Shown: piece by piece, positions 16,850 to 58,263 of the stretch
How the letters are laid out: the number at the start of each line of letters is the position of its first letter
Numbering within the stretch: position 1 is the first letter of the stretch
DNA from: Thalia democratica
Lineage: Eukaryota
Length of the DNA stretch: 64,000 nt
Direction of reading: 5' to 3'
NCBI GenBank assembly: GCA_965202585.1
Contig: OZ241832.1
Location: forward strand, 30,070,001 to 30,134,000
The notes under the pieces: generated by a model
Databases searched by the model: none
What the model was told of the DNA's origin: nothing
The model's input: the letters and a program-made list of their open reading frames with translations, nothing else
Position numbers and translations under genes: made by a program

Positions 16850-17367
16850 TCAACACGCGTTGCTTTCTTCGTGCCTAACCAAATTTGGCAACAAATTAAA
16901 CTTCTTACCGCATTTTCTACAAGCAAAAACGGGTCTGAAATGAGTTTTAATGTGCGTGTTTAAAGATGACGAAGTATGAAACTTCTTGTTACAATGGGGG
17001 CAAGGGTATTTCGGTTCTGAATGATACTGCATGTGGATTTTCAGCTCACGTTTGCTTTTAAAACACCTTCCATCCGGGCAAATCTCGCACTTGAAATTTC
17101 TCTCCTTACTGTGAGTAACTTCATGGTCTTTCAAGTTGGATTTCGTGATGAATCTTTTGCCGCAAGTGAGACACGCGTAAGGCTTTTCTCCCGTGTGCGT
17201 CCTCTGGTGAACTTTGAGGTTAAATTTGGTTCGATAAGACTTGAGGCAAATTTCGCACTGATGAAACATTTTGCGCGCGTTTTTGCGAAGGCGTATAGGT
17301 TCTTCCGTGGCAATCGTCTCCTTTGATTTTGATAAATTTTCTTGGAGGTTCTGCACAGCACTGCTGA
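16850..17367 (-). CDS. Terminal exon with five C2H2 zinc fingers (last one C2HC-like)
   Basis: CEIC..HQRTH-TGEKPY-CLTC..HEVTH; CEICPDGRC..HMQYH; CPHC..HIKTH; CRKC..HEESNAC. Acceptor TTTTCAG at 17368-17374; the MFKFS start given in the ORF track is intronic. Confidence 0.93.
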
Positions 17368-20300
17368 CTGAAAATTTAAACATATATTAGGTGCCTTAAG
17401 TATTACTTAACTCGTGAGTTTGAATAGTATCTGTACTGTCGCCGCTACCCAAGGATTTATTGTGAATTTCTTCCAGATTTAAAAAACATGCTTTTTGTTT
17501 AACTTTCAATAAAAAAATTATTTAAGCTAAAAAGCTGTCTTTATTGGTATAACAATGTCAAAAAGACATTGTAAATCTACTTGCAATGTGTTTTTAATGA
17601 AAAATAAATTAAACAAAACGTTCTATTCTTATAATAATTTTTTCGTATTTAATACAAACTTCTGTACTTATAATGTAAAAACAGTATCAAGTTCCAGGTC
17701 TTTCCAATTTTTATTTTTAAAATACAGATTTTTCTTTTACTTAGATTGTGAAGTTCCATGTTTTTAAAGGATTCGATGTTTTTTGGCAACTCTGGTACTG
17801 TGTAAAAGTAGTTCAAAAATCATTAAATTATTTCAAAACTCAATAATTGAATGAAAGCTATCATAATTCATTTATTTTTAATTTAATATCAAACGAATCA
17901 AAATACATAAATAATTCAGAATTTTATCATTTTAGTAAAATAAATCAATTTACTATCTGTAGTTTATATATAACGAATTTAATCTCATAAATAGACATAA
18001 ATAATTAAAGGAAACAGATAGTGGCATAAGTTTAAATTAAAGTATAAGGCATTGTTCATAATAATATAACAAAATATATAATTCTAAAAGTTTGTTTTAA
18101 AAGGTTAAAACTTAGTTATAAATAAATATTAAACCAAAATAAAATATACATTTTTAACTTTTAAATAAAATTTTAATTTGAACAATTTAAAGTATTTTTT
18201 TAGAAATAAGTCAATATTTAAACAACTATGAAAAATCTAACTTTCTAACATGAAATAAATGGTATAAAGTGACAGAAAAATATTTCTTTTAAAATCTATA
18301 ATTAATAAGCATTAAACAAAAAGAATAATCAGGTCATATACTTAACTTTTTTAATGATAGGTCTTGAAACATGGTTGCCACTCGTTTTTTTTAATTTCCA
18401 GGTTTCAAAGTTTCCTTTAGGTTTTTAAAATTACACATTTTGGGTCTATTTTTAGTTTGAAGTAAAGGCTATAAACTGTTTTAAATAGAATAAAAACATT
18501 GAAAAGAAACTGTTAAACTTCTTTAAATGTGATTTTGAATATAATAATTTTTGATGATGAACAAAAAACATTATCTATATTTTTGTGTCACATCGAAAAT
18601 TTTATACTTAATATGTAAAAATTATTTAAAATTCCGGGTCCTTTTTGCCTAAATTGTCAAGTTCCAGGATTTTCAAGGTTTCCAGGTAAAGTGGCAACCC
18701 TGTCAAAACCCATACTAACTTTAATTTGAAATAAAGCTAATACAATGTAAAGTATTTATCATTTTTCATTAATACCGCTCGTTAATTAAGCTTCATTATA
18801 ATAACAGTAAAATGAATAAAGTTTTAATAAAAATTATAATAATTTATATTACACAAAAAATTGTAGATAAATATGATTTTTTTTAAATAAAGTAAATAAC
18901 TATCAGTTTTTTAGTTTGCTAGCTTCCAAACTTATGCTAAAAACGTTATTATTGTCAAGACAGAGAAAAACATTATTGTAAAAACATAAACAAATTTAAA
19001 CAAGAAAATGTATTACTCAATTATAATCAAGATACAACTTGAGGAATAAAATTACATTTTGTATTAAAAATATTTTAACTAATTTTTTTACTGGAAAGGC
19101 TAGATAAACTGTACGTTTTTCTAGAAGTTATATATCAGTAAGAACAAAATTTATATATTATTAATTGTTTTTAAGTTCAGTAGTTAAAAATACCTGAAGA
19201 AAAACCATAACTATTTTAGGAACTTATTTTTTATTTAGTTGCTAAATTATTTCAATTTATTTATATAGATTGCAAACTTTAATGAAATATATTTTAAACT
19301 TAAAACAAAAGGTTTGGTTTATTTGTGGTAAAAAAGAGAGATAAGTATAGAAACATCAGTACTTAAAAGATACTTTTATTGTATTTAATGATCATAACTA
19401 TTCAATAAAGTTATTTTACTCAGTAAACCAATGCATCAAAAACTTGAAACGTAATCAGAATAAAAACGTAAGTATAAAATGTATCAATTGTTTGATAATA
19501 AAAACAACAATATCCTGAAAAACAGCATTTTAAGTGGAAGAAATAAATGGTAGGCAAAACACACAGTTTTGTAAAACAATTAAGGACATAGGGGGTCCAC
19601 CTTTATTTTTACAAGTCAATCTTATTCTGTAGAGTTAAATATTAGCTATTTTACCCCTTAAAAAACCCAAAGAAGAATTTGAGATAAAAGTTGGTGAGCT
19701 CAATAGGTTCCTAACCAGGGGCGTCGCGTGGGGTGTTGCACTGCCGCAACTGCACCACCTTGAAATTTTGTAAGAAAAAAAAAAGTATCTATAACGTTTT
19801 CGTTATTTTTTAAACGAAATCTCTTTTAAAACTCCAATTTTGAAAACGACCATTTTGCCCACTTCACTGCCGCAAACTCTTAGCTGACTGCCGCAAATGA
19901 ACTCAAAAAAGCAAAATTTCTTCAAGAATTACCGCAAAATCAATATCTTGCGGTAAGTAAGTTAAGTTGAAAATTCCCTAAAACAGGACTTGCTTAAGTA
20001 TCATCTACAAGCTATTGTAAACATAAAGTAAAAACAAAGCTAAGCTACTGCAAAGTGCAAAGGATTAAGCTTAAGTTTATGTACCCCCATGATTTTTTAA
20101 ATTTAAGAGATCACTTCTATTAAAAAGAAACAATAAAAGAACAAAACTTGTCATAAATTACATATTTTGAAAAAAATAGACAAAAAACCTAAATCACCAA
20201 AGTCTTTAAAATTTGTTTTTTTATTTAAATCTGCATACATAAACTTAACTATAACTGATTATTGTTATTATAAAGTTAATAAAATATTTAATTAAATTTT

Positions 20301-23300: not shown

Positions 23301-26300
23301 AAGTAATGATCAGGTCTTCCATGACTTACTCAAATTTATACAAAACATAAATTTTGTAAAATAAACAGATCTTGTTTTATTTTAGACTTAAGTAAAAGAA
23401 AAAGAATCTTTGATTACTAATTAAGACTTGTATGAAATTAAAAATAAATTTAAGTTTTTCTATGTCAATAAAAAAACCCATTAAGAACACAGAAAAATAG
23501 CTAAAATTTTTGAGTACACTGTACACTAGGGTGCTTATAAATACGGCGAACGTTGAGTTTTCAGCTGGACTTTTTACACTTGGCAAGTATCACAAAAACA
23601 CCCTGTGAAATTTTTAAGACGATTTGAAAAAACTTTAACGTTAATGGAATTCAATTTTCGAAAAACCACCCCAATGGAAACTGTATTGGACCAAAAAAAC
23701 AATCTTAAAGTTTTTAGCTGATTTTTTTTCACATGTGGCCAATTATTACATAAACACATTGTGCACAATTTAAGATGATTAAAAGAAAGCTTTATGGAGA
23801 CAACTCTTAATTTTAAGTTATTTTTATCAATTTTTTTAAGTTTTATTTATTTATTTTCTTTTTTTCAAATATTTGAGAAACTCCTTCATAATATTTTTTG
23901 TTATTCATTTTAAATTGTGCACAATGAGCTTTTGTGATAATTGCCACTAGAAAAATGATTCAAGCTAAAAATTGTAATGTTGATTTTTTTTGGTCTTATA
24001 CAGTTTGAATTGTGGTGGTTTTCAAAAAAAATAGAATGCTTCCACCGTGAAGGTTTCTTCAAACAATATAAAACTTTGCACAGGGTGTTTTTGTGATATG
24101 TATAAGTATTGTTAACATATTTAGCATAAAAATTAAAAATAAAGTTAGTCAAGTTTTAATTTCCACAAACAAGTTAAAAATTGGTAAAGAACTACATAAA
24201 CAGAACTTTAAGCTACTTAAGAAAACTTACCTTTAATATTTGATTCAATTTCATTATTTTGAAGAGTTACTTCAGAGTTTTGAAAATAGACTTTACCATT
24301 AGTGTGAATACTAGCTTTACTTTTTTCATCAACATTATCATCTAAACGGTAAAAAAATATTCAAATAAAGAAGAAAAAACAAGATCAAACATGAAATACT
24401 TATTTTTTATAAGGTATTTGTTTGAGAAAACTAACAGAAATACTTTATTTCTTACATTTACTTATACCTTGTCTTGAAGTGTTATCAATCATATTTAAAT
24501 TATCATCATTAGTACACAACTCAACTGGTTTGATTTTTATTGATTCAACATTTATTGTGTTCCAAGTTTGGTTGTTAAAACTTGAGTTCCCACCTTCTGT
24601 TCAAGTAAATGTGTAAAAAGTTTCAAACAAATTAAAATTAAGTTAAATTTTCAAATTTACCAGTCCTGTTCTCAGGAGATTTATCAAAATATTGCAGCAA
24701 CTTGTTATTTTTGGATGTAACTTCATTTACTTTTAGTGGCTGTATTGTGGTATCTACAAAAATATATAGTTTTATAAGTAAATTATTTTCTTTATCAATA
24801 TAATTTACTTTACCATTCTCAGTTTTGTTTGATGTTTCATCTTTTTCTTTTATATGATCAACAAATGTATTTCTGTTAATGTTTTTCAATCTGAAATATC
24901 TATTGTTTAAATATGAAAGGATAATTCTGTTTTGTAACAAACTTAATTAAAAGTGCACACTCTTTATATCACGTAAATTTTTAAGTTTATAAATAAAAAA
25001 TTTTAATATGTCATTTACATAAAATATAGTGCAGTAATACAAAAGTATAGAGCCAAAAACTGTTTCATAATGACAGCAAAATTTTTATTAGATCTTAATT
25101 ATTATTATTATATTGTTTATTGTGCAATGTTGGACTCGGGCATCAAAACCTGATTCACTAAAACAGGACACACATTGAGAAAAATAAAAATAAAATAAAC
25201 TACATTTATATTCAACAAAAAAAAGTTATAAATAAAACATTAAACAAATTTAAAACTATAAAAAAATCTCATTAAACAGTTTTAACTTATTTGCTTGACA
25301 TAAAAGGCGATAACTTAGTACATCATACAAACAAATTTGTAGAAATTAACAAAATTAAGTTAATAGTCTGTTAGGGGGAGGCTTAGGGATATAAAACTAA
25401 TTAATATCACAAGTAAAAAAAACGAAGAAATCACTAGTTAATTTAGTTGGGACAAATACTATAAAAAAAATTTAATTATTTTTCTGTATTGTTTTTAAGA
25501 AAAGTTACTGAATTATACTGATATTTACACTATTTATATTAAATCTTTTTAGTTCTAAGCCATAACACATTCTTTGTAATCAAGTATAAAAAACTGTAGA
25601 AGTAAAAAATCTTACTGTGTATTTTTCAACATGATTTTTTCTAATGCATAAATTTTGTCTGATAGTTTAACATTTGCTTCAGCCATCATTCTTTTTTCAA
25701 TTTCCAAACTGTGATAACTTTAAAATTTTAAACTTTTTTTAATACTAAGGCAGATGAAACTTTGTCATTGTTAAACTATTTTAGCATTTAAGTTTACTAT
25801 TGCTAAAAAACTGTATTTGTTGTTTAAATTTTTTTTCTTACTTTTTAACTTGTTGCAGCAATTCAATGTTTTTATCAAACAGGTTTTTATTTTCCTTTTC
25901 CAAAGTGCAATTCTTGTTTTGTAAATTTTTGTTCTCTGAGCTTTGCTTTTCAATAAGCTGAATCAAGCAAGACATCAGAAACTCAGCTTGGTTTAAATCT
26001 TAAAAAAATAAATTTAGTTACTATACAGTCACTTGGAGTATGGTTAAAAACGTATTACAAAGTAAACTGAAAGTCCATGTTTTTAATTAAAATTTAACTT
26101 AAGGTTATAATTCAAAATCCAACAAAAATTATAACATCATCATTATGATTTGGAAAAAATCTATATTATTTGTATAAATACTAGCTCTAGTTTTTTCAAT
26201 ACCTGGAGAGTTTGTTTTATATTTAATGTTTTATGATTTTAGAACATAACATATATATACAACATGTTTCATTTTTACTTATATTGTAAATATTATCATT

Positions 26301-26801
26301 TAAAAGTTAAACAAACAAAATAAAATTTAGTAACATGCTTTTCTACGAAAAAAAATTATAAAGATTTTATTATAACCTTTTCTAGAACTGGTGTAACTCA
26401 TAATTGAGTTTTCATCATTAATACAAAACTCATCTGGTTCGATTTTGATTGGATCAACATTTATTGTGTCTGAAGTTTGGTTGTTAAAAATTGAGTTCCC
26501 AACTTCTGTTCAAGTAATAAATATGTAAAAAAATTCCAAACAAATTAAGTTAAACTTTATAACTTACCAGTCCTGCTCTCAGACGACTTATCAAAATACT
26601 GCAGCAACTTGTTTGCATTAGGTGTAACTTCATTTACTTTTAGTGGATTGTTATTAGAACAATGAAAACTTTCTGCTTCAGCCAGATTTTTATTTTCCCT
26701 TTCCAAACTGTAGTTCTTGACTCGTAAAATTTTGTTTTCTGAGCTTTGCTTTTCAATAAGCTGTTTCAAGCGAGTCATCAGAAACTCAGCTTGGTTGATA
26801 T
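16850..26801 (-). CDS. Gene A: coiled-coil/linker module plus C-terminal 5x C2H2 zinc-finger protein (at least ~528 aa; 5' end unresolved)
   Basis: Minus-strand exons 26801-26568, 26505-26377, 25998-25842, 25717-25616, 24890-24814, 24753-24661, 24596-24468, 23212-23063, 17367-16850; all GT-AG, phases 1,1,1,2,2,1,1,1,1, no stops. Heptad-like segment (LIEKQSSENKNLQNKNCTLEKENKNL...), IKIEPD psi-K-x-E motif. Confidence 0.75.
18370..18702. mobile_element. hAT-type MITE (CAGGGTTGCCAC family), copy-A-specific insertion
   Basis: CATGGTTGCCAC...GTGGCAACCCTG; absent at the paralogous site ~40675 (TTCTCAAGACCCATAC). Same family as 62949-63340. TSD degenerate. Confidence 0.75.
19716..21796. mobile_element. 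Non-autonomous hAT element, ~2.08 kb, perfect 8-bp TSD
   Basis: TIR CAGGGGCGTCGCGTGG / CCACGCGACGCCACTG; TSD TTCCTAAC at 19708-19715 and 21797-21804; single TTTCTAAC at the empty site in copy B (~41630). No long ORF inside. Confidence 0.9.
22274..22931. mobile_element. Fold-back MITE with GGGCATAGGG termini at a TTAA site (Kolobok-like)
   Basis: TTAA|GGGCATAGGGG ... CCCTATGCCC|TAA; arms pair imperfectly over ~300 bp; empty site AATGTTAAATTTT at ~42085 in copy B. Further ends of this family at ~19584, ~20750, ~39020, ~41495. Superfamily call (RR termini plus TTAA) is inference. Confidence 0.75.
23588..24098. mobile_element. Palindromic MITE (~510 bp)
   Basis: TATCACAAAAACACCCTGTG ... CACAGGGTGTTTTTGTGATA with long imperfect arms; partial homologues at ~36290-36470 and ~42520-42960. 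Confidence 0.65.
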
Positions 26802-32136: not shown

Positions 32137-33966
32137 TTAGTCTAATTTAAACAAGGATAAAGAGTAATCAAACTCTCTTTGTTTGCATAATTCTGGCTTG
32201 TCCAAGTGAATATAAATAGCTTCCATTTTAATTAAATCAAAAATGTTCGTGCAACTTCTTAAAACTTTGAACTTTGTCTCACTGTAATTATTACCACATT
32301 TAGGATTTTTTACTAAGTGCTCTGAAATTGATGATCTTTTTGTTGCGTTTAAGGTTGCAATACTCATTTTCTTCGGTTGATTTTTGATATGGTCTTTCAC
32401 GCACTTAGGTACGTGCTCTTTTATTCTTGTTTCTAAATGCCTAGATGTTTGTCCTATATAGCTGTTTGCGCAACAGCATTTATACGTGTATACCACGCAA
32501 CTTTTGTGCTTGTAGGATATTAGATCTTTACCTCTAGGATTTAGGATAGCAGTAGATGTAAAAATTACTCTTGGTTTAGAAGCATGGTAAACTTTTTCTG
32601 TCATATTCTTGATATCTCTTTCAACTTGTTTTGATTTTTCACCCACATAGGGCAAAATTAATAGAACAGGACATTTCTCTGGTCCATAAGGTTTTGTGTA
32701 CTTTAGTCTTCTCAATTCAGTTTTGAATACCCTATCAATCAACGGATTAGGGTATCCATTCTTTATTAGTAATTCTTTTATAACCTTAAGTTCATTCTGA
32801 AATACTTCTGGCGAACATATTTTATTTGCTCTATGAAATAGGGTTTTAATCAAACCAATTTTTCTTCTTTTACTGCAATAAGATTGAAAATTAAGGTATT
32901 GACCAGTAAATGGTTTTCTGAAAATAGACGTTATGAAATTATTATCCTTTCTTTTGATTAAAACATCTAAAAATGATATTTGATCATTTTCTTCATTTTC
33001 TTTTGTAAATTTAATAGCACTATGCAAAGAGTTCAACCTCTCAAACAATAAATTACTAACTTTTACACTATCACTGATAACAAAACAATCATCCACAAAT
33101 CTCATGTACTTACAATTTGAATCGAATTCTGGTAGAACTTTGTATTCAAGATAGCCCATAAATATGTTTGCCAATGTAGGTCCTAATGGGGAACCCATGG
33201 CAATACCATCAATTTGTCGGTATAATATATTATTAAAACTGAATTCAACTTCTTCTGTTGCGAGTCTCATTAGTCGAACAAAATTACTTCTTTTCAGAGT
33301 CGGATTTTCAAGGTTATATAACATTTCTGCACAAATATCTATCACTTCATTTAAAGGTACACTTGTAAAAAGACTTTTTACATCAAAAGAACAAAGAAAC
33401 GTGTCTTTAGCTCCCCGGAGTTTTAAGTCATCTACAAACTTGAAAGAGTCTTTTACAATATATCTAGAAAAATACTTCAACACAGGATCTAAAAGACTAT
33501 TTAAGTATCTTGCCAATTCATGTTGTGGAGATCTTATCATAGAAAGTATAGGCCTCAGAGGTATATCCACTTTGTGTAGTTTTGGTAAACCATATAAACG
33601 AGGTCTTATGGAACCTACCGGTCTAATTAAATTATAATGTTCTTGAGAAAGTTCATTTTTATCAACCAAATCTTTTAATATTTGAATAATTTTCTTTTCC
33701 AACTTAACTATAGTTAGCTTTTCTCCTACAGGACCTATTTTCAAAAACTTCTTCTCATCATTAATTATGTTCAACATTTTAGAATTATAGTCCTCTTTAT
33801 TAAGAATTACGATTCCTGAACCTTTGTCAGGTTTGGTAATGACAATATGTTCATTACTTTTAATCTTAGTCAGGCTACTTATGATTTCTTTTGAATTAAT
33901 TACAGAACTATGTTCTGGCTTAAGTTTGCAAAAGTTGTGTGCAACTGAGACTAAGTTTGCTTTCAA
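32137..33966 (-). CDS. Penelope-like reverse transcriptase plus GIY-YIG endonuclease (5'-truncated, upstream frameshift)
   Basis: KPDKGSGIVI, PRLYGLPKLHK..PLRPI, SFDVKSLFTSVP, QIDGIAMGSPLGPTLANIFM, RFVDDCF, YIGQTSRHLETRIKEH. The upstream motif QNLSSQKFDEKDLTALSYGMNF is out of frame by +1 at an A7 run (~34058-34064). Confidence 0.93.
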   Translation of the reverse strand: MKANLVSVAHNFCKLKPEHSSVINSKEIISSLTKIKSNEHIVITKPDKGSGIVILNKEDYNSKMLNIINDEKKFLKIGPVGEKLTIVKLEKKIIQILKDLVDKNELSQEHYNLIRPVGSIRPRLYGLPKLHKVDIPLRPILSMIRSPQHELARYLNSLLDPVLKYFSRYIVKDSFKFVDDLKLRGAKDTFLCSFDVKSLFTSVPLNEVIDICAEMLYNLENPTLKRSNFVRLMRLATEEVEFSFNNILYRQIDGIAMGSPLGPTLANIFMGYLEYKVLPEFDSNCKYMRFVDDCFVISDSVKVSNLLFERLNSLHSAIKFTKENEENDQISFLDVLIKRKDNNFITSIFRKPFTGQYLNFQSYCSKRRKIGLIKTLFHRANKICSPEVFQNELKVIKELLIKNGYPNPLIDRVFKTELRRLKYTKPYGPEKCPVLLILPYVGEKSKQVERDIKNMTEKVYHASKPRVIFTSTAILNPRGKDLISYKHKSCVVYTYKCCCANSYIGQTSRHLETRIKEHVPKCVKDHIKNQPKKMSIATLNATKRSSISEHLVKNPKCGNNYSETKFKVLRSCTNIFDLIKMEAIYIHLDKPELCKQREFDYSLSLFKLD

Positions 33967-34793
33967 AGCAACTTCATCCTGTTTTGAACTTGGCTGGAGT
34001 TTTAAAAGTTGATTTAAATATTTCTCAAATCCTAAATAAGTAGCAACTTGATCAACCTTTTTTTGCTGGGAGTGAAAAATTCATTCCATAGCTTAACGCA
34101 GTCAAGTCTTTTTCATCAAATTTTTGAGAAGATAAGTTTTTGACACTTTGCTTGGTGAAGTGTTTCATAGAGCAAATAAAATATGTTCGCCAGAAGTATT
34201 TCAGAATGAACTTAAGGTTATAAAAGAATTACTAATAAAGAATGGATACCCTAATCCGTTGATTGATAGGGTATTCAAAACTGAATTGAGAAGACTAAAG
34301 TACACAAAACCTTATGGACCAGAGAAATGTCCTGTTCTATTAATTTTGCCCTATGTGGGTGAAAAATCAAAACAAGTTGAAAGAGATATCAAGAATATGA
34401 CAGAAAAAGTTTACCATGCTTCTAAACCAAGAGTAATTTTTACATCTACTGCTAACCTAAATCCTTTGGTAATGACAATATGTTCATTACTTTTAATCTT
34501 AGTCAGGCTACTTATGATTTCTTTTGAATTAATTACAGAACTATGTTCTGGCTTAAGTTTGCAAAAGTTGTGTGCAACTGAGACTAAGTTTGCTTTCAAA
34601 GCAACTTCATCCTGTTTTGAACTTGGCTGGAGTTTTAAAAGTTGATTTAAATATTTCTCAAATCCTAAATAAGTAGCAACTTGATCAACCTTTTTTTGCT
34701 GGGAGTGAAAAATTCATTCCATAGCTTAACGCAGTCAAGTCTTTTTCATCAAATTTTTGAGAAGATAAGTTTTTGACACTTTGCTTGGTGAAG

Positions 34794-35497
34794 TATTTCA
34801 TAGAGCAAATAAAATATGTTCGCCAGAAGTATTTCAGAATGAACTTAAGGTTATAAAAGAATTACTAATAAAGAATGGATACCCTAATCCGTTGATTGAT
34901 AGGGTATTCAAAACTGAATTGAGAAGACTAAAGTACACAAAACCTTATGGACCAGAGAAATGTCCTGTTCTATTAATTTTGCCCTATGTGGGTGAAAAAT
35001 CAAAACAAGTTGAAAGAGATATCAAGAATATGACAGAAAAAGTTTACCATGCTTCTAAACCAAGAGTAATTTTTACATCTACTGCTATCCTAAATCCTAG
35101 AGGTAAAGATCTAATATCCTACAAGCACAAAAGTTGCGTGGTATACACGTATAAATGCTGTTGCGCAAACAGCTATATAGGACAAACATCTAGGCATTTA
35201 GAAACAAGAATAAAAGAGCACGTACCTAAGTGCGTGAAAGACCATATCAAAAATCAACCGAAGAAAATGAGTATTGCAACCTTAAACGCAACAAAAAGAT
35301 CATCAATTTCAGAGCACTTAGTAAAAAATCCTAAATGTGGTAATAATTACAGTGAGACAAAGTTCAAAGTTTTAAGAAGTTGCACGAACATTTTTGATTT
35401 AATTAAAATGGAAGCTATTTATATTCACTTGGACAAGCCAGAATTATGCAAACAAAGAGAGTTTGATTACTCTTTATCCTTGTTTAAATTAGACTAA
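34794..35497 (+). pseudogene. Inverted partial copy of the Penelope ORF 3' half (thumb plus GIY-YIG)
   Basis: Translation FHRANKICSPEVF...SLSLFKLD is the same as the C-terminal part of the 32137-33966 ORF. Confidence 0.85.
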
Positions 35498-35691: not shown

Positions 35692-37360
35692 TTGTGAAAA
35701 AGACTTGTTTTATGTATAAAAATTAAAATTAGCAGACATATGTTTAAAATTTTAATAATAATAAATTTAAAAATATAATAAAAACATTAAATCCGTGCAA
35801 AATTGTCTTAGTGCAAATATTTCTGCTCGTGCAAAAGTTTCTTCGTGCAAAAGTATCTCCGTGCAATTTTATCTTTGTGAAATTTTATCCCTTCATGCAA
35901 AAGTGTCTTCGTGCAATTTTGAGAACTCGTGCAATTTTGTACGCTCGCGCAATTTAGACAGTTACCCTATTCCGATAGCTTTAAAACCTGCAACTATTTT
36001 GCATATATGAAGATAGATCTTTTTTAGAAGTTAATTACAACAATTTAAACTTATATTTTTGATTTATTTGTTATATCTTTGGGTAAGGTAGGTTAGTACT
36101 AACGGAAAAAAATTAAAAATAACAGGGAATATTTTTTTTACTTGTTATTACTTTTCAACTGATAACATAAATTTCAAAAAGCAAAAACAAAAAAGTTTGT
36201 TAGCAGTAAACTAAACAAAAATACATTGAGTTTTTTTTTAGAAAAGAGCAATATTTCAGGTGATTATAAAACTTTCACGTTGGCACCATACTATTTTCTT
36301 AAAACCACCACAAAACAAACTGTATTCGACCAAAAAAATACTACCTTATATTTCCTAGCTGGAACTTTTTTTTACATGTAGCAATTATCATTAAAACATA
36401 CCGTGCACAACTTAAAACGAAGAATGTTTTATGGGGGCACCGCTCAAATTTGTGGAATTTTTTTACTTTTTCAAAGTATTTTTTTTATTTTTCAGTGTTT
36501 TTTTTTCATAAAAAATAAATATTAATATTCTAATGTTAATAATTAAAAAAACACGTTTAAACCAAACTATAAAGTCTACAGAGTAGATTTAAATCTTCAT
36601 AAAAAGCTTTATCTAGTTCTTTACAATCGTTAGTTTTTATTTAGCTCTAATAAATTTAAGGGTAAATTATCTAAATAGTGCTTAATTTTACTCGACACAT
36701 TCAACTAAACATAATCACACTTAGCTTAAATTTGATTATGCAACCTTAATAATTTTAGTTTTTTACTTGAAAAATCTTAGGAGCTTTGTTAGCGATATAT
36801 TTAGGAGACGATAACTTATAATTGTTTTATTCAATTAAGAAAAGTGATAGATTGTGATTAAACAATAAACCAAACACTTTTTTTTTTGAATATTTAAATT
36901 TTTATTGTGTAGAATTAAAAAATACATTCAATTGTATAAATTTCAAAGTTGAAGCAACTTAGCTAAGTAAACTAAAACCCTTAAACGAAAATTTTCAACA
37001 TAAATGGTAAAAAAGACAGCTATAAAATAACATTGACAATTTAAGAAATTTTAAAGCAGTTTTATAACAAAATAGATTTCTTTACAATTAACATAAATGA
37101 AATACAAACGAATTTATCAGTTTTAAAATAAAAATATTTAAGAATAGCTTAAATTCACAACATTTGATAAAAACATTTTTATTCTTTTAGAAAAAAAAAT
37201 ACAATTTTTTACCTGTTTATATTTTTTACAACATCAAATATCTATCTAACAATAAAGTATTTATAGTAAACTCAAATATAATGAAGTTATGTTAACATGA
37301 ATGCAGTTCATCAAATTTTTTATTTATTTTTGCAATAAACTTGTAAACTTGTAGCTTGTT

Positions 37361-38121
37361 TTACACTTTTCTCTTCCTTATCAAGGGCAGGGCTATGAAA
37401 AGATCATCAAAAACAACTTTTTTTCCAATCTGCTTTCGAACATCTTTCTCAAATATTTTGGTTGGGATTTTATTATTAATAAGATCGCTTATTAATCTTT
37501 CAACACTGCGCAGAGCATAAATGTTTTTGCCTGATTTCACCTTCTCAGAAGCTTCGTTTTTTATTTTTTCCAAAACACTCAAACCCTTCGAAAGTTTTAC
37601 TTTTTCATATTCAACTATAGTATTACGATCGCTGAAGAAGACCCTAGCTGCTTTTTTACTTTTTACCAAGGGCAAGATTCTGTAGAGACCAGCAAAACAC
37701 ATGCCTCCTACCTGCTCTTTTACCCGTTGTTCGAAATCGTGCATTGTGATGTGTTCTTCCATCAGCTCGCTTATCAAATCTTCGACGTTGCTAGGGGCGC
37801 AGGTGTTTTTTCCCGAATACTTCTTATGATCAGCTTTGCTTCTGATTTTGAGGAGCACGTCCAATCCCCTCTGGAGTAACATTCCGTCTTCAAAGCTGCC
37901 ACTGAACAAGTTTCTGCTGGTGCTTTCTGTAACAGTACTGTCGTCTTTCCGCATTTTGCACGGAACATTCGCCTCATTGCGCTCAACTGGAACTTTTCTT
38001 TTAAATGGTGAAACGCTGTTTTCTGTGTTGGTCTTCCGACAAGTGACGTTTTGCGTTCTTCTGGAATGATCCACTGAATCAGAAGAATCCGGTGAACCGG
38101 AACGGTTTTGCCGAAGGTAAC
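37361..38121 (-). CDS. Terminal exon (253 codons) encoding two tandem ~85-aa helical repeats resembling TAFH/NHR1
   Basis: Acceptor TTCATTCAG at 38122-38130, phase 1; stop followed by AATAAA near 37325. Repeat 1 KGL/RGLDVLLKIRSK..SGKN..SNVEDLISELMEEHITMHDFEQRVKEQV..LYRILPLVK; repeat 2 KGLSVLEKIKNE..SGKN..SVERLISDLINNKIPTKIFEKDVRKQI..LFIALPLIR. ORF is certain; the TAFH call rests on recalled consensus. Confidence 0.75.
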
Positions 38122-41100
38122 CTGAATGAAAATTAGATGCTTACTAGTTTTTAAACTTGTTTGTGACTGTAAATAACGACAGTAAAGTTTGAAAAATTAT
38201 TTAACTTGTTAATAAATTCAACAGAAAAGTTTGATTGAATATTTTGAAAAAGCACTAACTGGCAAAATAGATATACTTATTTTTACCAATTTATGTTTAA
38301 CATCCGTATTTATGTGGCAAGTATGTTTTAAAAATCAGTCTCTAGTTTAATTTTTAATTTCGTAATTTAACCTTACTTATAAATCTTACAAACTTAAATG
38401 CAGTTATACTTTTTATATAAATACGGATGTTAAAGATAAATTGGTAAAAATAAGTATATGTCAGCTGCAAAGAATAACTGTAAATTCAAACATTCAAATA
38501 TTTCAATAGACTTAATACCATTTTATATAAAAACTTGATTAATTAAAGATTACATTCAAAATTAATAGTCAAACTTATTATTAATTTTGTGTGTTTTTAG
38601 TAAAAAAGTAAACCTAAATTAAAAAGCTGTCTTTATAAGTATAACAATGTTAAAAATATACTGTAAAGCTACTAGTAATTAAAAAAAAAACAATACAAAA
38701 TATTTTTTCTTATGATGATATTTCGTATTTAATGTAAATTTCTGTACCTAAAACAAATAGTATCAGGGTTCGTGCGCTAAATTTTTTTCATTTAGCCTGA
38801 CTGAGACCAATTTAGCCTGACATTTTTTCAAAGTAAGGAGAATCCCCTTTAGAAGTCACTTTAGGTACTGGGGAGTCTTGATTAGTACTATTGTAGTCTC
38901 CGACTTCAACCAGCTTTATCTCAAAAATATTTAGAGCTTTAAAAATCTGCAACAAGCAAATCATAGCTTAGTTACAACTCAATAAAATAAGAGACTAAAT
39001 TGTGAAAAAGGTTATTACCCCCCTATGCCCTTAACATAACAATTTCAGTGATAAGTTTTAAAATTAGTGTTATATCTAATCTATTGCTAGTTCAAAAATG
39101 TAATATATATTTCTAAACACAATTGTTAAATTTAATTAAGCACTAAGTAAAAACATTATAACCAGAAGATTTATAATAAAACGACGTGCATTGTCTCGTG
39201 TTTTATTAAAATCAAAAATGAAACACTTTCACCAGTATTAATATAAGTAAAAATGTTTATTATAGTATTTTGACTAATACTTAAAATTGATACATAATTA
39301 TAAATCCTGAACTCTAAATAAATACAGTGATTGTTGACGTCGTATCAGATTTAAAAAGCTTAAACTAAAATTAAAAAAAAAACCTTTAATATTTTGTTCT
39401 TGTAAAGAAAAATGAATTGTACCTAAAATTTGTACTCCCACAAAACTTAGTACTTAAGCTAAGTTTTAGTGTTGTGAATATCTCTAATAACTTTAAACAA
39501 ACAGTAAAATATATGAATAATCTGCTAAGAAATTTAATCTTAAATGTATTTGGTATAAAGCCTTTAAATTAGAAATTAAAACAGTTAAACCAACTAAGCT
39601 CTGAAAAACATAGCTGATGTAAACAAATTCAAACAAACAGCTAAGTTTGTTGAACTAAACTGTAATGTTTAAACTATATTTTTTTTATGAATCTTATAAT
39701 TATGACGTGAATAATCTACTAAAAACAAATAATGAAGATTCTTAGTTTTTTTTTAGAGATTCAACAAAAGGTGTTAAGCATTTATTTTTACAAATACTGA
39801 CTGATTTTGTCTTTAATAATTAAATCTTTATTTATAAATTAATTCACATTTCAATTTGATCTTAAAAAGATTTCTCAATTTTTTTAATCAAAAATTTTCA
39901 AGCATATGAACTGAGAAAAACTGAGATTCTCAAATTTTTAAATAAAAAAACTTATTTAGCCTGACGCGCACGAACCCTTTAGTATTAATTCCAGGTCTTT
40001 CCAGTTTTATTTTTATTTTTAAAACCCAGGTTTTTCTAGTTTTTTCTTTTGTCAAAATTGTCAAGTTACAGGTTTTTTAGGATTCGATGTTTTGTTTTGC
40101 AACCCTGGTACTATGTAAAAGTATTTTAAAAATCATTAAATTGTTATAAGTAAATTAAAGTTAAAATCAAAGCTATCATAATTGATTTTTTTTATACTAA
40201 AATAATTCAAATTATTTTACTTTGTTAAAATGCTTGGATTTACTATCTGTAGTTTATAACCAAGAGGTTATTTTAATAATTATACCAAGATAATTAAAGT
40301 ATTCATATAGTGGCATAAGCTTAAAGCATTAGGCAATGTTCATAATAATAATAACAAAATATATAACTCTATAATTTTGTTTAGCGATTTTAAGTGTTTT
40401 AGAAGGTTCAAACTTAGTTATAAATAATTACTAAACCAAATTATAATCAATTGTTTTTAATTCAATCGTTAAAATATAATTTTAGTGTAAACAATTTAAA
40501 GTAATATTTTTAGAAATAAGTTAATAATCAAACAACTATGCAAAATCTAACTTCCAAACATGAAATAAATGGTAACAAGTCATAGAAAATTATTTCCTTT
40601 AAAATCTAAAAATTAACAAATAATAAACTAAAAGTTAATAAGGTCATATACTCAAGTTGTTTAATGATAATTCTCAAGACCCATACTAACTTTAATTTGA
40701 AATAAAGCTTATACAATGTAAAATTTTTAACATTTTTTATTAATACCTCCAGTTATATAAAAGTCCATTATAACAAAAGCAAAATGAATAAGGTCTGAAT
40801 AGGAAATATAACAGTTTTTTTACTACAAAAAGTTATGACAATTTTTCTGGAATTTAGTAAAAAAATTATGACGCATAATCTTACAATTTTATTAATTTTA
40901 CTATTTTACTAAAATCTATTTAGTTATCTACAAGAACTATTGAAAAGGGTAGATTGAAAAATTTTTAGTTCACAAAAAATAAAATATACTGCAAAATGAA
41001 TTGTTGTCTCAAATTTATATAAAAACTGCATTATTTTCTAGAAGATGTATATCAATGAGAACAAAATTTATACATAAATAAACGTTTTTAAGTTCAGTAG

Positions 41101-44100
41101 TTATAAATAACTAAAGAAAAACTCAGTTATTTTAGGAACTGATTTATAGTTTTTCATTCACTCTTAATTCTCTTGTTGTTAGAAGATTTTAATGAAACGT
41201 AACTTAAACTTTAAACAAAAGGCTTGGTTTATTTGCGGTATATAAGAAGATGAGTAGATAAACATCTGTATATAAAAGATTTTTTTATCTAATGATCATA
41301 AAAAATAGATATCTTACTGTGAAACAACTAAGCCAAAGCATTAACAACTTAAACATAATCAGAATAAAAAATTTAAGTATAAAATGTATAAATTTTCTTC
41401 TAATAAAAATAACAGTAACTCTGAAAACCAGCATTATAAGTTGAAGAAACGAAAATGTATATTAGGTAAAACACACAATTTTGTTCAACAACTAAAGGCA
41501 TAGAGGGTCCACTTTGATTTTTACAATTTGATCTTATTCTGTAGAGTTTCATATTAGCTATCAGAAACTTTTAACAGCTTAAAAAATTCAAAGAAGAATC
41601 TGAGATAAAAGTCGGTGAGCTAAAAACTTTTCTAACAGAAGGCACAAACCAAAACACAAAAATACAACTTCACTATAAAAATATGTTCTCCTTTAGTTTT
41701 ATGCAATATTCTTCAAATTTTCACGATGAGTCTATTGCTAACATGTCAAGCCTTTTAAATGCAAAACAAAAACTTTAAAACATAATTAAATCACAAACAT
41801 TTTTCTTTTTTTTTATCTAAAATTTTAATTTGTTTTTTTTTTTTAACCTAACATTAAAAGTATAAAATGTTTCTAAAAAGTTCAAGGTCTCTAGCTCAAA
41901 AATAAAGGAGAAGATATATTTTATTTTTATTTAAATTTCAAATATTCGAAAAAACCGGCAAAAACATATTGGCTCAATACGTTTGTACCGTAAATAATTA
42001 TATCTCAGAATTTAACAAATTTTTTAAACTGTATAAACACTGACTTAGAGTTTATATTTCAAGCTTTCATATAAGAACCAATGTTAAATTTTGTAAAAAA
42101 AAATCTTAAGCTGAATTTTCATTGACAAACTAAATTGTTATTTTTTTATTGAATATTTATAACTGAACAACAAAATAAAAATTTAATTAAAAAATATTTA
42201 CCTTTTGAAGTTGCTTTTATTGATCTGTTGATAGCTGAAATTACACTATTTGAATACAAGATGAAATTTGGAACACTATCTTGTTTGGTTGTGACTAATT
42301 TATCATCGTTTGAGTTTAAACTGAAGTTTTTTGAGTGAACGCTTGCAACTTCTGCAAAAAAAAAACATTGAGAGCATTCAGAGAATTAAAACATTTTAGT
42401 TTGTAAATATATAATTTTTGCATGTTTAAATAATTGGTAAGTAACTATCAGTTCTTCAGACTTACTCAGATTTGTTTTACAAAATATTAATTGATTTACA
42501 AAATAATGTTTTTATTTACACCCTAATGTAAACTGTATGGGACCAAAAAAAATCAACCCTAGAGTTTTTAGCTGATTTTTTCTTAATGTGGCCAATCATC
42601 ACATAAACACATTGTGAAAAATTTAAGATGATTTAAAGAAAGTTTTATGGAGAAAATTCTTGATTTTTGTCAAACTTTATTGCTTTTTGTAAGTTATATA
42701 AAAATATCCAGTTATTTTTTTTCAAAAAATTGAGAAATGTCTTCATAAATTGTTTGTTAATCTTTTTAAATTGTGCACAATAATTATTTTATATTTTACC
42801 CTCATGTAAAAATATTCCAGCAAAAACTTTAAGGTTTTTTTTTGTTCTTATACAGTTTGAATTAGGTTGGTTTTCAGAAAATAGAATATCCCCAACGTGA
42901 GAATTTCTTCAAATAATCTAAAATGTTGCACAGGGTATTTTTTTCAATATGTATAAGCATCCTACTGTTAACCAACTTAGCATATTAATCCTAAGAAAAA
43001 CGTTAGTCAAGTTGTAATTTTCACAATCAAGTAGTAAAGAACTAAATAAAAAGAATTTTAGGTTACTTTAAAATATTTACTTAGTGTTTGAGTTAATTTC
43101 ATTATTTGAAAGAGTTCCTTTAGGATTTTGAAAAATAAATTTATCATTTGTGTGGATGCTAGCTTTAGTTTTTTCATCAACATTATCATCTAAAAGGTAA
43201 ACAAAATATTTTAAGAAAGAAGAAAAACCAAGATGAAACATGGAATATTTATTTTTTATAATGTATTTGATTAAGAAAATTAACAGAAGTACTTTATTTT
43301 TTACCTTTACTTATACCTTGTCTTGAAGTGTTGTCAATCATATTTGAGTTTTCATCATTAATACACAACTCATCTGGTTCGATTTTGATTGATTCAACAT
43401 TTATTGTGTTTGAAGTTTGGCTGTTTGAACTTGAGTTCCCACCTTCTGTTTAAGTAAATATGTAAAAAAAAATTCTATACAAATTAAGTTAAACTTTCAA
43501 ACTTACCAGTCCTGTTCTCAGGAGACTTATCAAAATATTGCAGCAACTTTTTATTATTTGATGTAACTTCATTTACTTTTTGTGGCTGTATTGTGCTATC
43601 TACAAAAAACATATAGTTTTATAATGAACTTTTTTCAATTAGTATAATTTACTTTACCATTCTGATTTTTGTTTGATGTTTCATCTTTTTCTGTTATATG
43701 ATCAAAGAATGTGCTTCTATTGATATTTTTTAATCTAAAACAGTTAATATTAAAATATAAAGGATAATTATGTTTGATAATTAATTTATTAAAAACTGCA
43801 CACTTTTGATATCCAGTAATAATAATAATGATAAGAATAAAGTAATAATAGTAATAATTAATAACTATGTAAATTAAATATTTCAACATCTCAATAAACA
43901 AAATACAGAAAAGTGACATTTAGGTATAGGCCAAAATATGTTTCATGATAATAGCAATTTATTTATTAAAACCTTAAATAAAAGTAAAAAGCTGTGGAAG
44001 TATAAAACCTTACTTTGAATCTTTTAACTTGATTTTTTCTAATGCATAAATTTTGTCTAATAATTCAACATTTGCTTCAGCCATCATTCTTTTTTCAATT

Positions 44101-45387
44101 TCTAAACTGTGATAATTTTATTTTTTAAAACCTAAACATTATAACCTAAGGAGTTATACTTTTTTTCAATATCATTATAAATTATTTTTTCTCAATCTTT
44201 AAGTATTATAGTAATTTTTGTAAAAATAACATTCTAAATAATAGTAGTTACAATAATTTTTTTTTTCTTACTTATTAACTTTTTGCAACAATTCAATGTT
44301 TTTATCAGCCAGATTTTTGTTTTCCGAGCTTTGCTTTTCAATAAGCTGCATCAAGCAAGACATCAGAAACTCAGCTTGGTTTAAGTCTTAAAAAAATATA
44401 CAATCACTTGAAGTTTGGTGAAAAACAAAATACAAAGTATACATAAAATTTAATATATTAAAATATATAATAATTGGTCATCAATCAAAATTAAACCAAA
44501 ATTACGAAACTATCACTATTTGATAAACAACTATATTATTTGTGTAAATACTAGCTCTAGTTTTTTATATGCCTTTACAGCAGGGTTTCCGAAAGTGGGC
44601 AAAGTGGTCTCCTTGGGGGCCATTAAAAAAGTTTAGGGAGCCCTACGGTCATGATTTGAAACTTACATTGGATATTCTGGAGTTAATGATAAGTAGCAAA
44701 AAAAAGAAGGTCTTCGAAGTTTTTGGGGTAGTTTTTAGCAGTCTTTTAAAGGAGGCTTTTGGAAAAAGTTTGGGAAACCCTGCTGTAAAGTATATTTTTT
44801 GATTGGAAATCATAAATTATCTAAACGACAGGTTTCATTTTATCTTTTGTAGTAAATATTATCATTTAAAAGTTAAACAAACAAAAAAAAAGAAGAACAA
44901 ACATGATATACTTATTTCTAATAACATACTTGTTTAAAATAAAATGTAAAAATTTTATTTATACCTTGCTTTGAACTGTTGCAACTCATATTTGAACTTT
45001 CATCATTAATACACAACTCATCTGGCTCAACTTTTATTGATTCAACATTTATTATATTTAAAGTTTGGTTGTTAAAACTTGAGTTCCCACCTTCGGTTTA
45101 CATAAGTTTGTAAATGAAATTCTAAACTAATCAAGTTGAACTTTCAAACTTACTAGTCCTGCTTTCAGGAGATTTGTCAAAACGTTGCAGCAAATTATTA
45201 TTATTAGGTGTAACTTCATTTCCTTTTGGTGGATTGTTATCTGAACAATGAAAACTTTCTGCTTCAGCCAGATTTTTATTTTCCCTTTCCAAACTGCAGT
45301 TCTTGACTCGTAAAATTTTATTTTCTGAGCTTTGCAATTCAATAAGCTGTTTCAAGCGAGTCATCAGAAACTCAGCTTGGTTGAAAC
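37361..45387 (-). CDS. Gene B: paralogous coiled-coil/linker module spliced to a tandem TAFH-like terminal exon (putative chimeric gene; 5' end unresolved)
   Basis: Exons 45387-45154, 45093(or 45090)-44965, 44386-44272, 44106-44014, 43734-43658, 43599-43507, 43445-43317, 42351-42202, 38121-37361; no stops, phases match gene A. Two acceptors are mutated and need in-frame cryptic AGs. Confidence 0.6.
38764..39979. mobile_element. hAT-type non-autonomous element, copy-B-specific
   Basis: TIR CAGGGTTCGTGCGC / GCGCACGAACCCT; TAGTAT on both flanks; subterminal TTTAGCCTGA repeats; empty site at ~17685 in copy A; contains a truncated Kolobok-like end at ~38860-39035. Confidence 0.78.
44581..44782. 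mobile_element. hAT-type MITE, copy-B-specific
   Basis: CAGGGTTTCCGAAA / TTTGGGAAACCCTG; flanks CTTTACAG and CTGTAAAG; absent at ~26200 in copy A. Confidence 0.75.
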
Positions 45388-53773: not shown

Positions 53774-54515
53774 TTACACTTTTCTTTTCCTTATCACGGG
53801 CAGGGCTATGAAGAGATCATCAAAAACAACTTTTTTTCCAATCTGCTTTCTAACATCTTGCTCAAATATTTCTGTTGGGATTTTATTATTAATAAGATCG
53901 CTTATTAATCTTTCAACACTGCGCAGAGCATAAATGTTTTTGCCTGATTTCTTCTTCTCAAAAGCTTAATTTTTGATTTTTTGCAAGACTTATAAACCTT
54001 TAGCAAGTAACACTTTGTCATATTCAAACATAGCGTTAGGACACTTCAAGATGCTAACAGCTGATCTTCTACTTCTTATCAAAGGCAAAGCTCTGCAGAG
54101 ACCATTGAAGTTAATGTTCCCTGTCTGTTTTCTTACTTGTCGTTCGAATGTTTGCATAAAAATTTTAATCCATGACAAGTTTGCCAATAGATCTTTATAC
54201 GTTATGCGGGTCGTAAGTGTTTTTTGCCAGAATTTTTCCAACAATTAGCTTTGCTTCTGATTTTTCTCAACACATTCAAGCCCTTCTTAAGCATCATACC
54301 TTCCTCAACGCTACCATTTAACTCACTGAACAAGTTTCTAGTGGTATTTTTAACAACACTTTGTTCTTTCAGCATCTTATATGGGATATGCTCTTGATCA
54401 TACACAGTTGGAGCTTTTCTTTTAACGATAAAACGTTGTTTTCTGTGTTGAGCTTCCGACAAGTAAAATTCTGTGGAAAAGTCCAGTGATTCAAAACGAT
54501 TTTGGTAAAAAGAAC
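53774..54515 (-). pseudogene. Decayed paralogue of the tandem TAFH-like terminal exon
   Basis: Acceptor TTCGTTGCAG retained (54516-54525, phase 1); frameshifts near 54200-54225 and in-frame TAA at ~53990 and ~53966; ends ...LPVIRKRKV-TAA like the intact copy. Confidence 0.85.
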
Positions 54516-56650
54516 CTGCAACGAAATTGGACAACTTGTTAGTTTTAAAACAAACTTTGGATTATAAAACAAACAAGTTAAGTTTGCGGAACTGTTTTAG
54601 GTCCTAAATATAACCAGTTTAGAAATATTTTGGATAAGCTTTACTTTAAATAACTAAGTAAGTATACTTATAAAAACAAAATAACTGCATATAATTTTTC
54701 ACATAAAAAACTAAAATTAAAGTTAATAAATAACAAAATTAAAGTTTAAAACTAGTGATTGATTTTGAAACACAACTCAGGATTTTAAACTTTAATTGGT
54801 CAATTCATATATGTCAGGTGCTAGGAGTTACCGTAAGTTCAAACATTAATTTTTTAATAAAACTCAAAAGACATAATGTAGCTTATGTAAAAACAGAATT
54901 AATAAAAATATTCAATAAAAATAAGTGATTAAGTGTTTGAAAACAATTTCAAGGTTTAGTTCAAACTATCTGAGTTAGCATTGTAGGTTTAGATCGTTTT
55001 TGTGAACAGAAATACTGAAAATAATATAGATTTTATACCAAATGATCATCTATAATATAAAAATCGAAAAAACTACAATAAATACAACGACTACCACTTT
55101 CAAAGTTATTAATCATAAATTTTTATACATTTGCTTAACTTACTTAAATATTATTTTTGCTGAAACGTTTTAATTTGGAAAATATTAATACGATAAAACA
55201 AGAAGAGTAAATGACTTTTCAAAACCTCTAAATTATTTTGGAATACAAAAAAAAAAGAGTTTTTATTAAAACAAATTTAACCAGAGTTGTTTGTTTTGCA
55301 AATCAAAAAACGTTTAACGACTGTTTCAAAGCTTTAATTGCAGTTAAAACTAAGATTCAATATCTTTAGGTACGTTTTTTATACTCTGTTTTAGTCTGAT
55401 GACCTACTAAAATAATAAAGTAAAAGTAATAGTCACAGTATATTGTTGTTACAAAAGAAAATAACCGCATCAGACATTTAAGTTTAAAGTAAATGTTTTC
55501 TTAAGATATAAATGCTTATTAAATTATTCTTAATTGTTGCAATAACTTATATTTGTTTCTAAAATAAACCAATATCGAGTTAAAACTAGTCTCATAAATT
55601 TTACTTTCTAAAAAACTCGTTTTTGTTTTGTCTGAAGGTATCAATTTTTTTGTGTACCATATTAAAAGACAAGTTATTTACTTCTAAGCGGAGTAATAGA
55701 TTTCAAGGTGTTTTATAATAATATTGGTTTAACTCCACGTAGTTACTGTTTTAACAGATTGCGAATAAAAAAATCATTTAAGTATAACTTGCGCATGAAA
55801 TTAAAAGAATAAAATTAAAACTTTTGACGAGTTGCACTCTAGATAGTTTAGAGAATATATTCTTCATAGAAAAATAGCTTTTATCTTTCATTTGTTTCAT
55901 TTATAACTACTAAACAAATAAATCTAAGCAAGAGTTGTCAACAGTTAATAATATAATTTAGAAAAAATTAACCGCGAAACATTAAACAATATTTGTTGTT
56001 GTTGAAATTTTTGTAAACATTAAACTTTACACCTGCGAATTTATTTTTGATATTATCTTATATAAATGAACACAATTATTATTTTCAAGATTTAAAAATT
56101 TTAAACATTTGAATTAAAAAGTAAAATTATATAACTTACTTAATTCAAAAAGTTTTTTTATTTAAAAAACCAGAGAAGTTTGAATATTTTTTTGAAAATT
56201 AACTTTGAATTTAAAATAACACGACCAATTTTAAAAGGCTTGTGTGTATAAATTATGTTTGTTGTAAGATATAAACATAAATTTAACATTGAAGATATAG
56301 ATATAAGTATAAAAATTGTTTGAAAAAAAAAAGATAATTACTGAATCTAATTTATCAATACTAATTTAAAAATTTTATGTGAATTTTCTAAATATTAATA
56401 ATTTTGTAATTATTTAATACACGATGAAACTTTGTAATCGTTTCATTAACTACAAAATAATGCAATTTGTTTCTGTAGTTAGATTTAAGTGAAGTGTTTT
56501 ATCTTATTAAATTTGATTACAAATTTTTACACATAAAATTATAAGTTACATGGCAATTCGAACTCTTGAAAAAATGTTTAAAAGGCCACAACTCAAAAAG
56601 TAATATACATTTGAAAATATAAAAAGATGCGTATGTATGTCTATCTTATA

Positions 56651-58011: not shown

Positions 58012-58206
58012 TCATTCGTCAGTAAAATCTTGTCGATTGAGTCGTGCTCCATTTGCTCTAAACTCCCAATTTTCAACTTTCCCTAGTCCAAGACTGGATT
58101 CGGCCGTGTGGCCGCTCCTCTTCTGCCTCACAAGCTGCGACATGCCCGCATCGCAGCAGAAGAAGAAAAACAGAAAGAGCGCTCCGATGAAAAAACTGAG
58201 CTTCAT
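58012..58206 (-). CDS. Single-exon 64-aa prepropeptide (signal peptide, RQKR furin-type site, 34-aa mature region)
   Basis: MKLSFFIGALFLFFFFCCDA-GMSQLVRQKR-SGHTAESSLGLGKVENWEFRANGARLNRQDFTDE*; GC-rich island in AT-rich surroundings; upstream TATA/Inr. Confidence 0.7.
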   Translation of the reverse strand: MKLSFFIGALFLFFFFCCDAGMSQLVRQKRSGHTAESSLGLGKVENWEFRANGARLNRQDFTDE

Positions 58207-58230
58207 GTTGTCTATGTAGCTGGTTGTTGT

Positions 58231-58263
58231 GAATTGAAATACCATCGAGTTGATCGTCTTATA
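58231..58263 (-). promoter_or_regulatory. TATA-like box plus initiator-like element for the prepropeptide gene
   Basis: TATAAG at 58263-58258 and TCAATTC at 58237-58231 (putative +1 at 58235), 28 nt apart. Confidence 0.5.

Follow-up and report, generated by a model that had tools for sequence, protein, structure and literature searches.

The window analyzed here, a 64,000-nt stretch of Thalia democratica DNA, has a G+C content of ~25%, whereas the minus strand of positions 37361–38121 stands at 41%. On this strand there is an open frame of 259 codons, bounded by an AG acceptor at 38122–38123, which follows a pyrimidine-rich tract, and by a TAA stop at 37361–37363. A 1,081-nt RNA contig (run X2, record 9) matched positions 37218–38119 without mismatch and then continued at 42200–42353, with 25 nt more beyond its two aligned segments. 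The DNA runs X3 and X4 cover 38122–42201 continuously, and the RNA contig skips this intron. When the RNA contig was read together with the splice consensus, the join fell at 42202|38121, which places the upstream 150-nt exon in frame with the terminal exon. The segment 37361–38121 is a genuine spliced terminal exon and makes up the 3′ end of an expressed gene, referred to in the following as the window gene. The last junction is the only one backed by RNA; the start codon and the first exons were not seen in the RNA contig. The features of the locus are collected in Table 1.

Table 1. Features of the window gene and of related exons, in window coordinates.
Position	Strand	Feature	Basis
16853..17386	-	Last exon of paralog B, with five C2H2 fingers and a phase-1 acceptor	Pfam zf-C2H2, E 3.4e-25
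37218..37360	-	3′ untranslated region	Mismatch-free in X2 record 9; stop codon at 37361-37363
37364..37615	-	R2, second TAFH-like four-helix domain	42% identity to R1; 2p6v, Z 10.1
37634..37891	-	R1, first TAFH-like four-helix domain	Sub-threshold Pfam TAFH; 2p6v, Z 8.3
37892..38121	-	Ser/basic-rich linker opening the terminal exon, contains FKRK, phase-1 acceptor	Open frame
38122..42201	-	Intron	Skipped by RNA contig; covered in X3/X4
42202..42351	-	Upstream coding exon, 150 nt, phase 1-1	Junction with the terminal exon in X2 record 9
44965..45090	-	Tentative exon, 126 nt, phase 1-1, IKVEPDE motif	AG/GT sites and frame
45154..45387	-	Tentative exon, 234 nt, phase 1-1, leucine-zipper-like heptads	Inferred from frame and splice sites
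53777..54561	-	Degraded paralog of the tandem-repeat exon	61% identity; 2 TAA stops; three frames

The C-terminal 176 residues encoded by the terminal exon comprise two helical units of ~85 residues each, R1 followed by R2, which align with an E-value of 2e-17 over 77 residues (42% identity). When the two repeats were compared with those in a second genomic copy of the exon (L003) and in a metagenomic relative (P0001), both described below, 24 columns were invariant across the six repeat copies, giving the pattern L..G..VL.KI...A.....SG.N..A...VE..I..L.........FE.....Q.G...F..L....PL....K. The invariant residues are mostly at hydrophobic positions of helices H1, H2, H3 and H4. These results bear out the initial annotation of the DNA, which had described two ~85-residue repeats with a shared pattern in this segment. 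L003 and P0001 both conserve the linker that precedes R1 and place the acceptor identically, and R2 is followed by a basic RKRKV tail, which forms the C-terminus of the protein.

The 150-nt exon is 71–77% identical to its counterparts in two paralogous genes, B and C′. Positions 38.6–52.7 kb are colinear with 17.5–30.8 kb of the window (gene B) at 70–86% identity, introns included, and the same colinearity, but inverted, extends to sequence 7–23 kb to the left of the window (gene C′). Gene B (window 16853–26799, minus strand) and gene C′ (G000:C8:30054284–30063899, plus strand) face each other in a large inverted segmental duplication, which reaches at least from G000:C8:30019500 into the window's right part. 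The 150-nt exon and the candidate upstream exons of the window gene recur in both paralogs, but these end in a terminal exon with five C2H2 fingers; in gene B, this finger exon occupies the position that the tandem TAFH-like exon has in the window gene.

Upstream of the 150-nt exon, four candidate exons, at 45154–45387, 44965–45090, 43507–43599 and 43317–43445, are all of phase 1-1, and the last of these is a second copy of the exon at 44965–45090. An in-frame path is available through 45387–45154, 45090–44965, 42351–42202 and 38121–37361, and the overhang of the RNA contig at 42352–42353 is consistent with the 126-nt exon, which ends in ..CAAG. Two other candidates were set aside: the exon at 43081–43189 was left out of the model, its phase being unfit for a direct join to 42351, and the exon at 44013–44117 had no in-frame join to 43507–43599.

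For exons of the zipper type found at 45154–45387, at least 69 genomic matches were obtained, most of which fall in arrays on contig C9. These arrays are dense at 38.76–39.56 Mb and 33.10–33.80 Mb, and in the 20 kb that we examined, at 38.766–38.786 Mb, C2H2 finger exons adjoin the zipper-type exons. The C9 arrays look like a lineage-specific expansion of zinc-finger genes that share an N-terminal module without a Pfam family. By its upstream exons, the window gene belongs to the local leucine-zipper C2H2 family, and it may also use the zipper exon, but it does not carry the terminal C2H2 finger exon of that family. Since every exon identified is of phase 1-1, and the finger and TAFH-like terminal exons alike follow phase-1 acceptors, an exon swap is the simplest origin of the gene. 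Most likely, the tandem TAFH-like exon replaced a finger exon by such a phase-1 swap during segmental duplication.

Several other elements were observed around the gene. Between the window gene and paralog B lies a Penelope-like retroelement (32140–35494) whose 647-codon frame matches a reverse transcriptase (RVT_1, E 2e-11) and is GIY-YIG-like at its C-terminus; behind this frame, the 3′ part of the element recurs in two partial, inverted copies, at 34136–34642 and 34769–35494. The intron of the window gene includes a repeat (~38600–40000) with a summed contig depth of ~1e5 or more in X3/X4, compared to ~100–500 in its flanks, which is abundant in a marine metatranscriptome run as well. To the right, a signal-peptide-like ORF at 58015–58275 (minus strand), which might encode a neuropeptide precursor, recurs at 95% identity in the left arm of the duplication (G000:C8:30019520–30019701), where the frame is open over 102 codons; no Pfam match was found. 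Between this copy and the L003 exon, the left arm also holds a locus with adjacent frames of 267 and 216 codons, BACK/Kelch-repeat-like by sequence (L018, G000:C8:30026150–30027601), which has no counterpart in the right arm. Lastly, at 3849–4244 (plus strand) there is a 132-codon frame with 49% G+C in a background of 23–30%, without a Pfam match and with overlapping frames open on both strands. A conserved single exon and a foreign insert are both possible readings of this frame.

The initial annotation had read the two repeats as divergent TAFH/NHR1-like domains, and we approached this reading through both predicted fold and sequence. AlphaFold models based on just 4–6 sequences had four helices per repeat, with a pLDDT of 82.6 for the two-domain model and 78.5 for R1 by itself (model mfb9e4068b180). 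The models were compared exhaustively with 48,161 PDB representative chains using VIA-align. For the R1 model, the best match was the human TAF4-TAFH domain (2p6v; Z 8.3, rmsd 3.0 Å, 83/86 residues), followed by ETO-TAFH (2pp4; Z 6.3), with the best unrelated chain at 5.4; at Z-scores below ~13, a match may reflect an arrangement common among helical bundles. With the two-domain model, 2p6v was again the best match, this time on R2 (residues 90–176; Z 10.1, rmsd 2.5 Å, 84 residues). ETO-TAFH was second here too (Z 7.0), the best unrelated chain reached 6.3, and MTGR1 NHR1 (Z 5.5) and TAF4-RST (Z 4.8) were among the lower matches.

Foldseek, which the initial annotation had proposed as a check on predicted structures, returned eTAFH (2knh) and TAF4-TAFH (2p6v) as its top two matches to R1, with TM-scores of 0.61–0.65; 2h7b and 7ac1 were listed as well, and the E-values were 1.6–3.1. 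A TAF4 region from A. thaliana was at the top of a structural search of AFDB Swiss-Prot. The predicted models have the TAFH-type placement of H1 and H4 and the four- to five-helix alpha-alpha-hub fold. What gives the fold evidence its weight is that both repeats pick the same small family above everything else.

The sequence signal is more modest. The Pfam TAFH profile (PF07531) matched the whole exon with a score of 19.0 bits (E 0.0014), which falls below the gathering cut-off of 27 bits. R1 alone scored 15.6 bits and R2 did not match; across the repeat copies, the profile matched one of six. The match spans only profile positions 24–51, which correspond to the H2-loop-H3 part, on R1. The profile match anticipated by the earlier reading was thus found, but below the cut-off and in one repeat of the pair. 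In a genome-wide scan with the same model, only the canonical TAF4 locus on contig C2 was recovered (G000:C2:1504531–1505727). This is the genome's only canonical TAFH domain, which is clearly TAF4-like and is split over three exons, and hhalign placed the repeats on it in the expected register.

When the six repeats were aligned with the spliced TAF4 TAFH by the Smith–Waterman method, all six scored above 2,000 shuffles (z 2.5–7.9), and the alignments extended from H1 to the LPL.[RK] motif. Likewise, an HMM built from the six repeats ranked the true TAF4 TAFH first of 20,001 sequences, the others being 20,000 shuffled versions, but hmmsearch gave it only 13.4 bits, a modest signal; shuffle tests of this kind control composition and not helical periodicity. 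An H2-loop-H3 hairpin with its loop motif is a defining trait of the alpha-alpha-hubs (PMC7948954). All six repeats have the corresponding motif, L..[DEN][KH][IV]....F, with a hydrophobic anchor in the loop, and it lines up with LVDDKVTPQVF in the TAF4 of this genome and with LLDGKIEAEDF in human TAF4. Other landmarks shared with TAFH are L..L.K[IL], with which H1 begins, an SGK-type loop like that of human TAF4, and LP..[RK] in H4. The human TAF4 TAFH pattern given in the earlier reading agrees with the sequence of the 2p6v chain.

Taken together, the TAFH/NHR1-like reading is supported, mainly by the fold and more modestly by the sequence, although the Pfam score falls short of the cut-off. 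No rival family matched better, and the repeats are quite probably divergent TAFH domains, nearer to that of TAF4 than to that of ETO. The main alternative is a lineage-specific four-helix domain that merely resembles TAFH, either an analogous hub or a generic bundle, which might have a different ligand. We consider this unlikely: both repeats ranked TAF4-TAFH first and ETO-TAFH second of the 48,161 chains, 0.7–3.8 Z units above the best unrelated chain, the H1–H4 alignment kept a single register and exceeded the shuffles in six of six repeats, and TAFH was the only transcription domain that Pfam matched. Some observations nevertheless fit an analogous domain, namely the Pfam score below the cut-off, the Foldseek E-values above 1, the presence of PAH and RST among the weaker structural matches, and the outcome of a search with the six-repeat profile against PDB sequences, which gave none at E ≤ 10. 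Moreover, the subgroups of alpha-alpha-hubs may themselves be analogous folds (PMC7948954).

The 802-Mb genome was found to contain three intact copies of the exon and two degraded ones. One intact copy, on the small contig C1303, is 99% identical to the window exon and is probably the other haplotype. The other, L003, is 88% identical and lies 66 kb to the left of the window exon; homologues of the upstream exons of the window gene were not found within 30 kb upstream of it. Outside the genome, an exhaustive phmmer search with the exon against 1.84 billion representatives gave a single true relative, P0001, which is 55% identical and sits on a 1.6-kb marine metagenome contig. The degraded copy at 53777–54561 of the window is of the type closest to P0001. 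A match to P0002, a 3,972-aa bacterial-type protein with Flg_new repeats, was spurious, corresponding to a 33-aa stretch that recurs in beta-rich repeats. Searches for homologous proteins with the exon, and of metagenome contigs with the repeat alignment A2, gave no match. Because P0001 keeps the acceptor position and resembles the degraded paralog type, the tandem pair must be older than the split of the two paralog types.

All three intact genome copies, and P0001 as well, have kept the frame, the acceptor and the stop. Relative to L003 (dS 0.27), dN/dS was 0.30 overall, ~0.40 in R1 and 0.06 in R2; relative to P0001, which comes from another organism (dS 0.8–0.9), it was 0.38 overall and 0.21 in R2. 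The much stronger constraint on R2 than on R1 hints that the two sites are not equivalent. The 150-nt exon had a dN/dS of 0.27–0.30 and is open in all three paralogs, which indicates that the translation start lies further upstream. These values, the retained frame, acceptor and stop, and the presence of spliced RNA make it very unlikely that recent segmental duplication gave rise to the transcript as a by-product, coming from a chimeric, non-functional gene heading for decay, even though the locus is pieced together from inverted and tandem duplications and holds a Penelope-like insertion, two of the five exon copies are already degraded, and the upstream exons are internally duplicated. The best explanation is a lineage-restricted gene under protein-level selection, known from one genome and one marine metagenome contig. 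That the repeats are winged-helix (FUR-like) DNA-binding domains can be dismissed with near certainty, since the Pfam match on R1 (E 0.003–0.008, 17–18 bits) is below the 23.1-bit cut-off and the models are all-helical without wing strands, Fur structures giving TM-scores of 0.35–0.36 at an rmsd of 8–9 Å; a Pfam spectrin match was similarly below the cut-off and unsupported by the fold.

TAFH domains have been described only in TAF4, together with a histone fold, and in the ETO/MTG/Nervy proteins, together with NHR2–4 and MYND, in one copy per protein (PMC7948954). The exons identified here contain no histone fold, NHR2–4 or MYND. The reading frame stops 6 residues past helix 4 of R2, so that neither the TAF4 histone fold nor the NHR2–4/MYND region of ETO can follow. 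The unusual architecture suspected at the outset, a double TAFH with no histone-fold or MYND partner, therefore holds for these exons. Pfam searches with the 76-residue start of the terminal exon, the 150-nt exon and the candidate upstream exons gave nothing credible, and no THAP-type zinc motif that might serve as an N-terminal domain was present in the window. Searches for a known tandem arrangement in the ESM Atlas, by features and by shape, and in the AFDB clusters, with the two-domain model, gave no usable match, and the papers searched made no mention of a tandem or free-standing TAFH.

In TAFH domains, the site between H1 and H4 receives short hydrophobic motifs from disordered regions of regulators (PMC7948954). 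By analogy with TAF4 and ETO, the H1/H4 groove of each repeat would accommodate one such motif, belonging to an activation or repression region that is disordered, and (D/E)phiXphiphi and DphiphiXXphiphi are candidate ligand motifs. The FKRK motif in the linker and the C-terminal RKRKV motif suggest, from the sequence, that the protein would be imported into the nucleus. A protein of this kind, without DNA-binding fingers, histone fold or MYND, might act as a nuclear two-site adaptor. In one scenario, the shared zipper would pair with finger-bearing paralogs, leading to indirect recruitment to DNA. In another, the protein would be a soluble decoy that competes with the TAF4 of TFIID for the same activator motifs. 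A complex prediction with the two-domain region and the zipper exon scored 0.00, which is evidence neither way.

As a whole, it appears fairly probable that the locus encodes an expressed, lineage-restricted gene in which two tandem TAF4-type TAFH domains have been combined with upstream exons of a zinc-finger family through an exon swap, and that its product serves as a nuclear two-site adaptor or decoy. A more specific history is possible, but doubtful: a TAF4-derived TAFH came to lie in one exon by retro-copying or fusion, underwent tandem duplication, and then, as a terminal exon of phase 1, was shuffled into a fast-expanding zipper-C2H2 family, whose finger-less member now pairs with DNA-binding paralogs and brings in two activator-docking sites, or titrates TAF4 ligands away from TFIID. 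If this were so, the gene would represent a new type of co-regulator built from a domain of a general transcription factor. A small protein with two TAFH-like hubs joined to a zinc-finger family's N-terminal module would show that TAFH can be reused beyond TFIID and the ETO co-repressors. The gene would also be a clean natural case in which phase-1 terminal exons have been shuffled, and its pair of hubs would provide a compact system for asking how alpha-alpha-hubs select among disordered ligands. In our judgment, the novelty lies in TAFH-like hubs that stand free, in tandem, on the scaffold of a zinc-finger family; their distribution is narrow, and the function is one that we infer.

Among known systems, the closest is the TAFH domain of TAF4 (2p6v, PF07531), with which the repeats share the order of the helices, the SGK-type H1–H2 loop, the hydrophobic anchor of the H2-loop-H3 region and the LP..R-type motif in H4. 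However, the repeats are only 14–20% identical to it, below the Pfam cut-off, and their H3–H4 segment is about four residues shorter. TAF4 has one copy of the domain, whereas there are two in tandem here, and the TAFH of this genome's TAF4 is split over three exons, while the repeats are intronless within one. TAF4 also has a C-terminal histone fold; none follows R2, so the protein could not pair with TAF12 or assemble into TFIID in the way TAF4 does.

The NHR1/eTAFH domains of ETO/MTG8, MTGR1 and Nervy (2pp4, 2knh, 2h7b, 5ecj) were the second-best family (Z 6.3–7.0, Foldseek TM 0.52–0.61). Like the repeats, NHR1 is a small helical domain, in its case one that docks hydrophobic motifs of transcription factors, but the ETO/MTG/Nervy proteins also have an NHR2 oligomerization helix, NHR3 and MYND, none of which is present here, and the match is weaker than that to TAF4. 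The plant RST domains (TAF4-RST, 7ac1; RCD1) and the PAH domains of Sin3 are built on the same H2–H3 hairpin foundation and gave weak matches (Z 4.3–4.8); they differ in their lower scores compared to TAFH, in the packing of H1 and H4, and in the lack of any sequence signal found. Sin3, with several PAH copies per protein, does provide a precedent for a multi-hub scaffold. Finally, the local organization resembles that of C2H2 clusters with a shared N-terminal module, with a logic comparable to that of the KRAB-ZNF clusters, in that the window gene shares upstream exons, introns and phases with B and C′. Whereas the members of the zipper-C2H2 family that we examined end in finger arrays, the window gene ends in a tandem TAFH-like pair.
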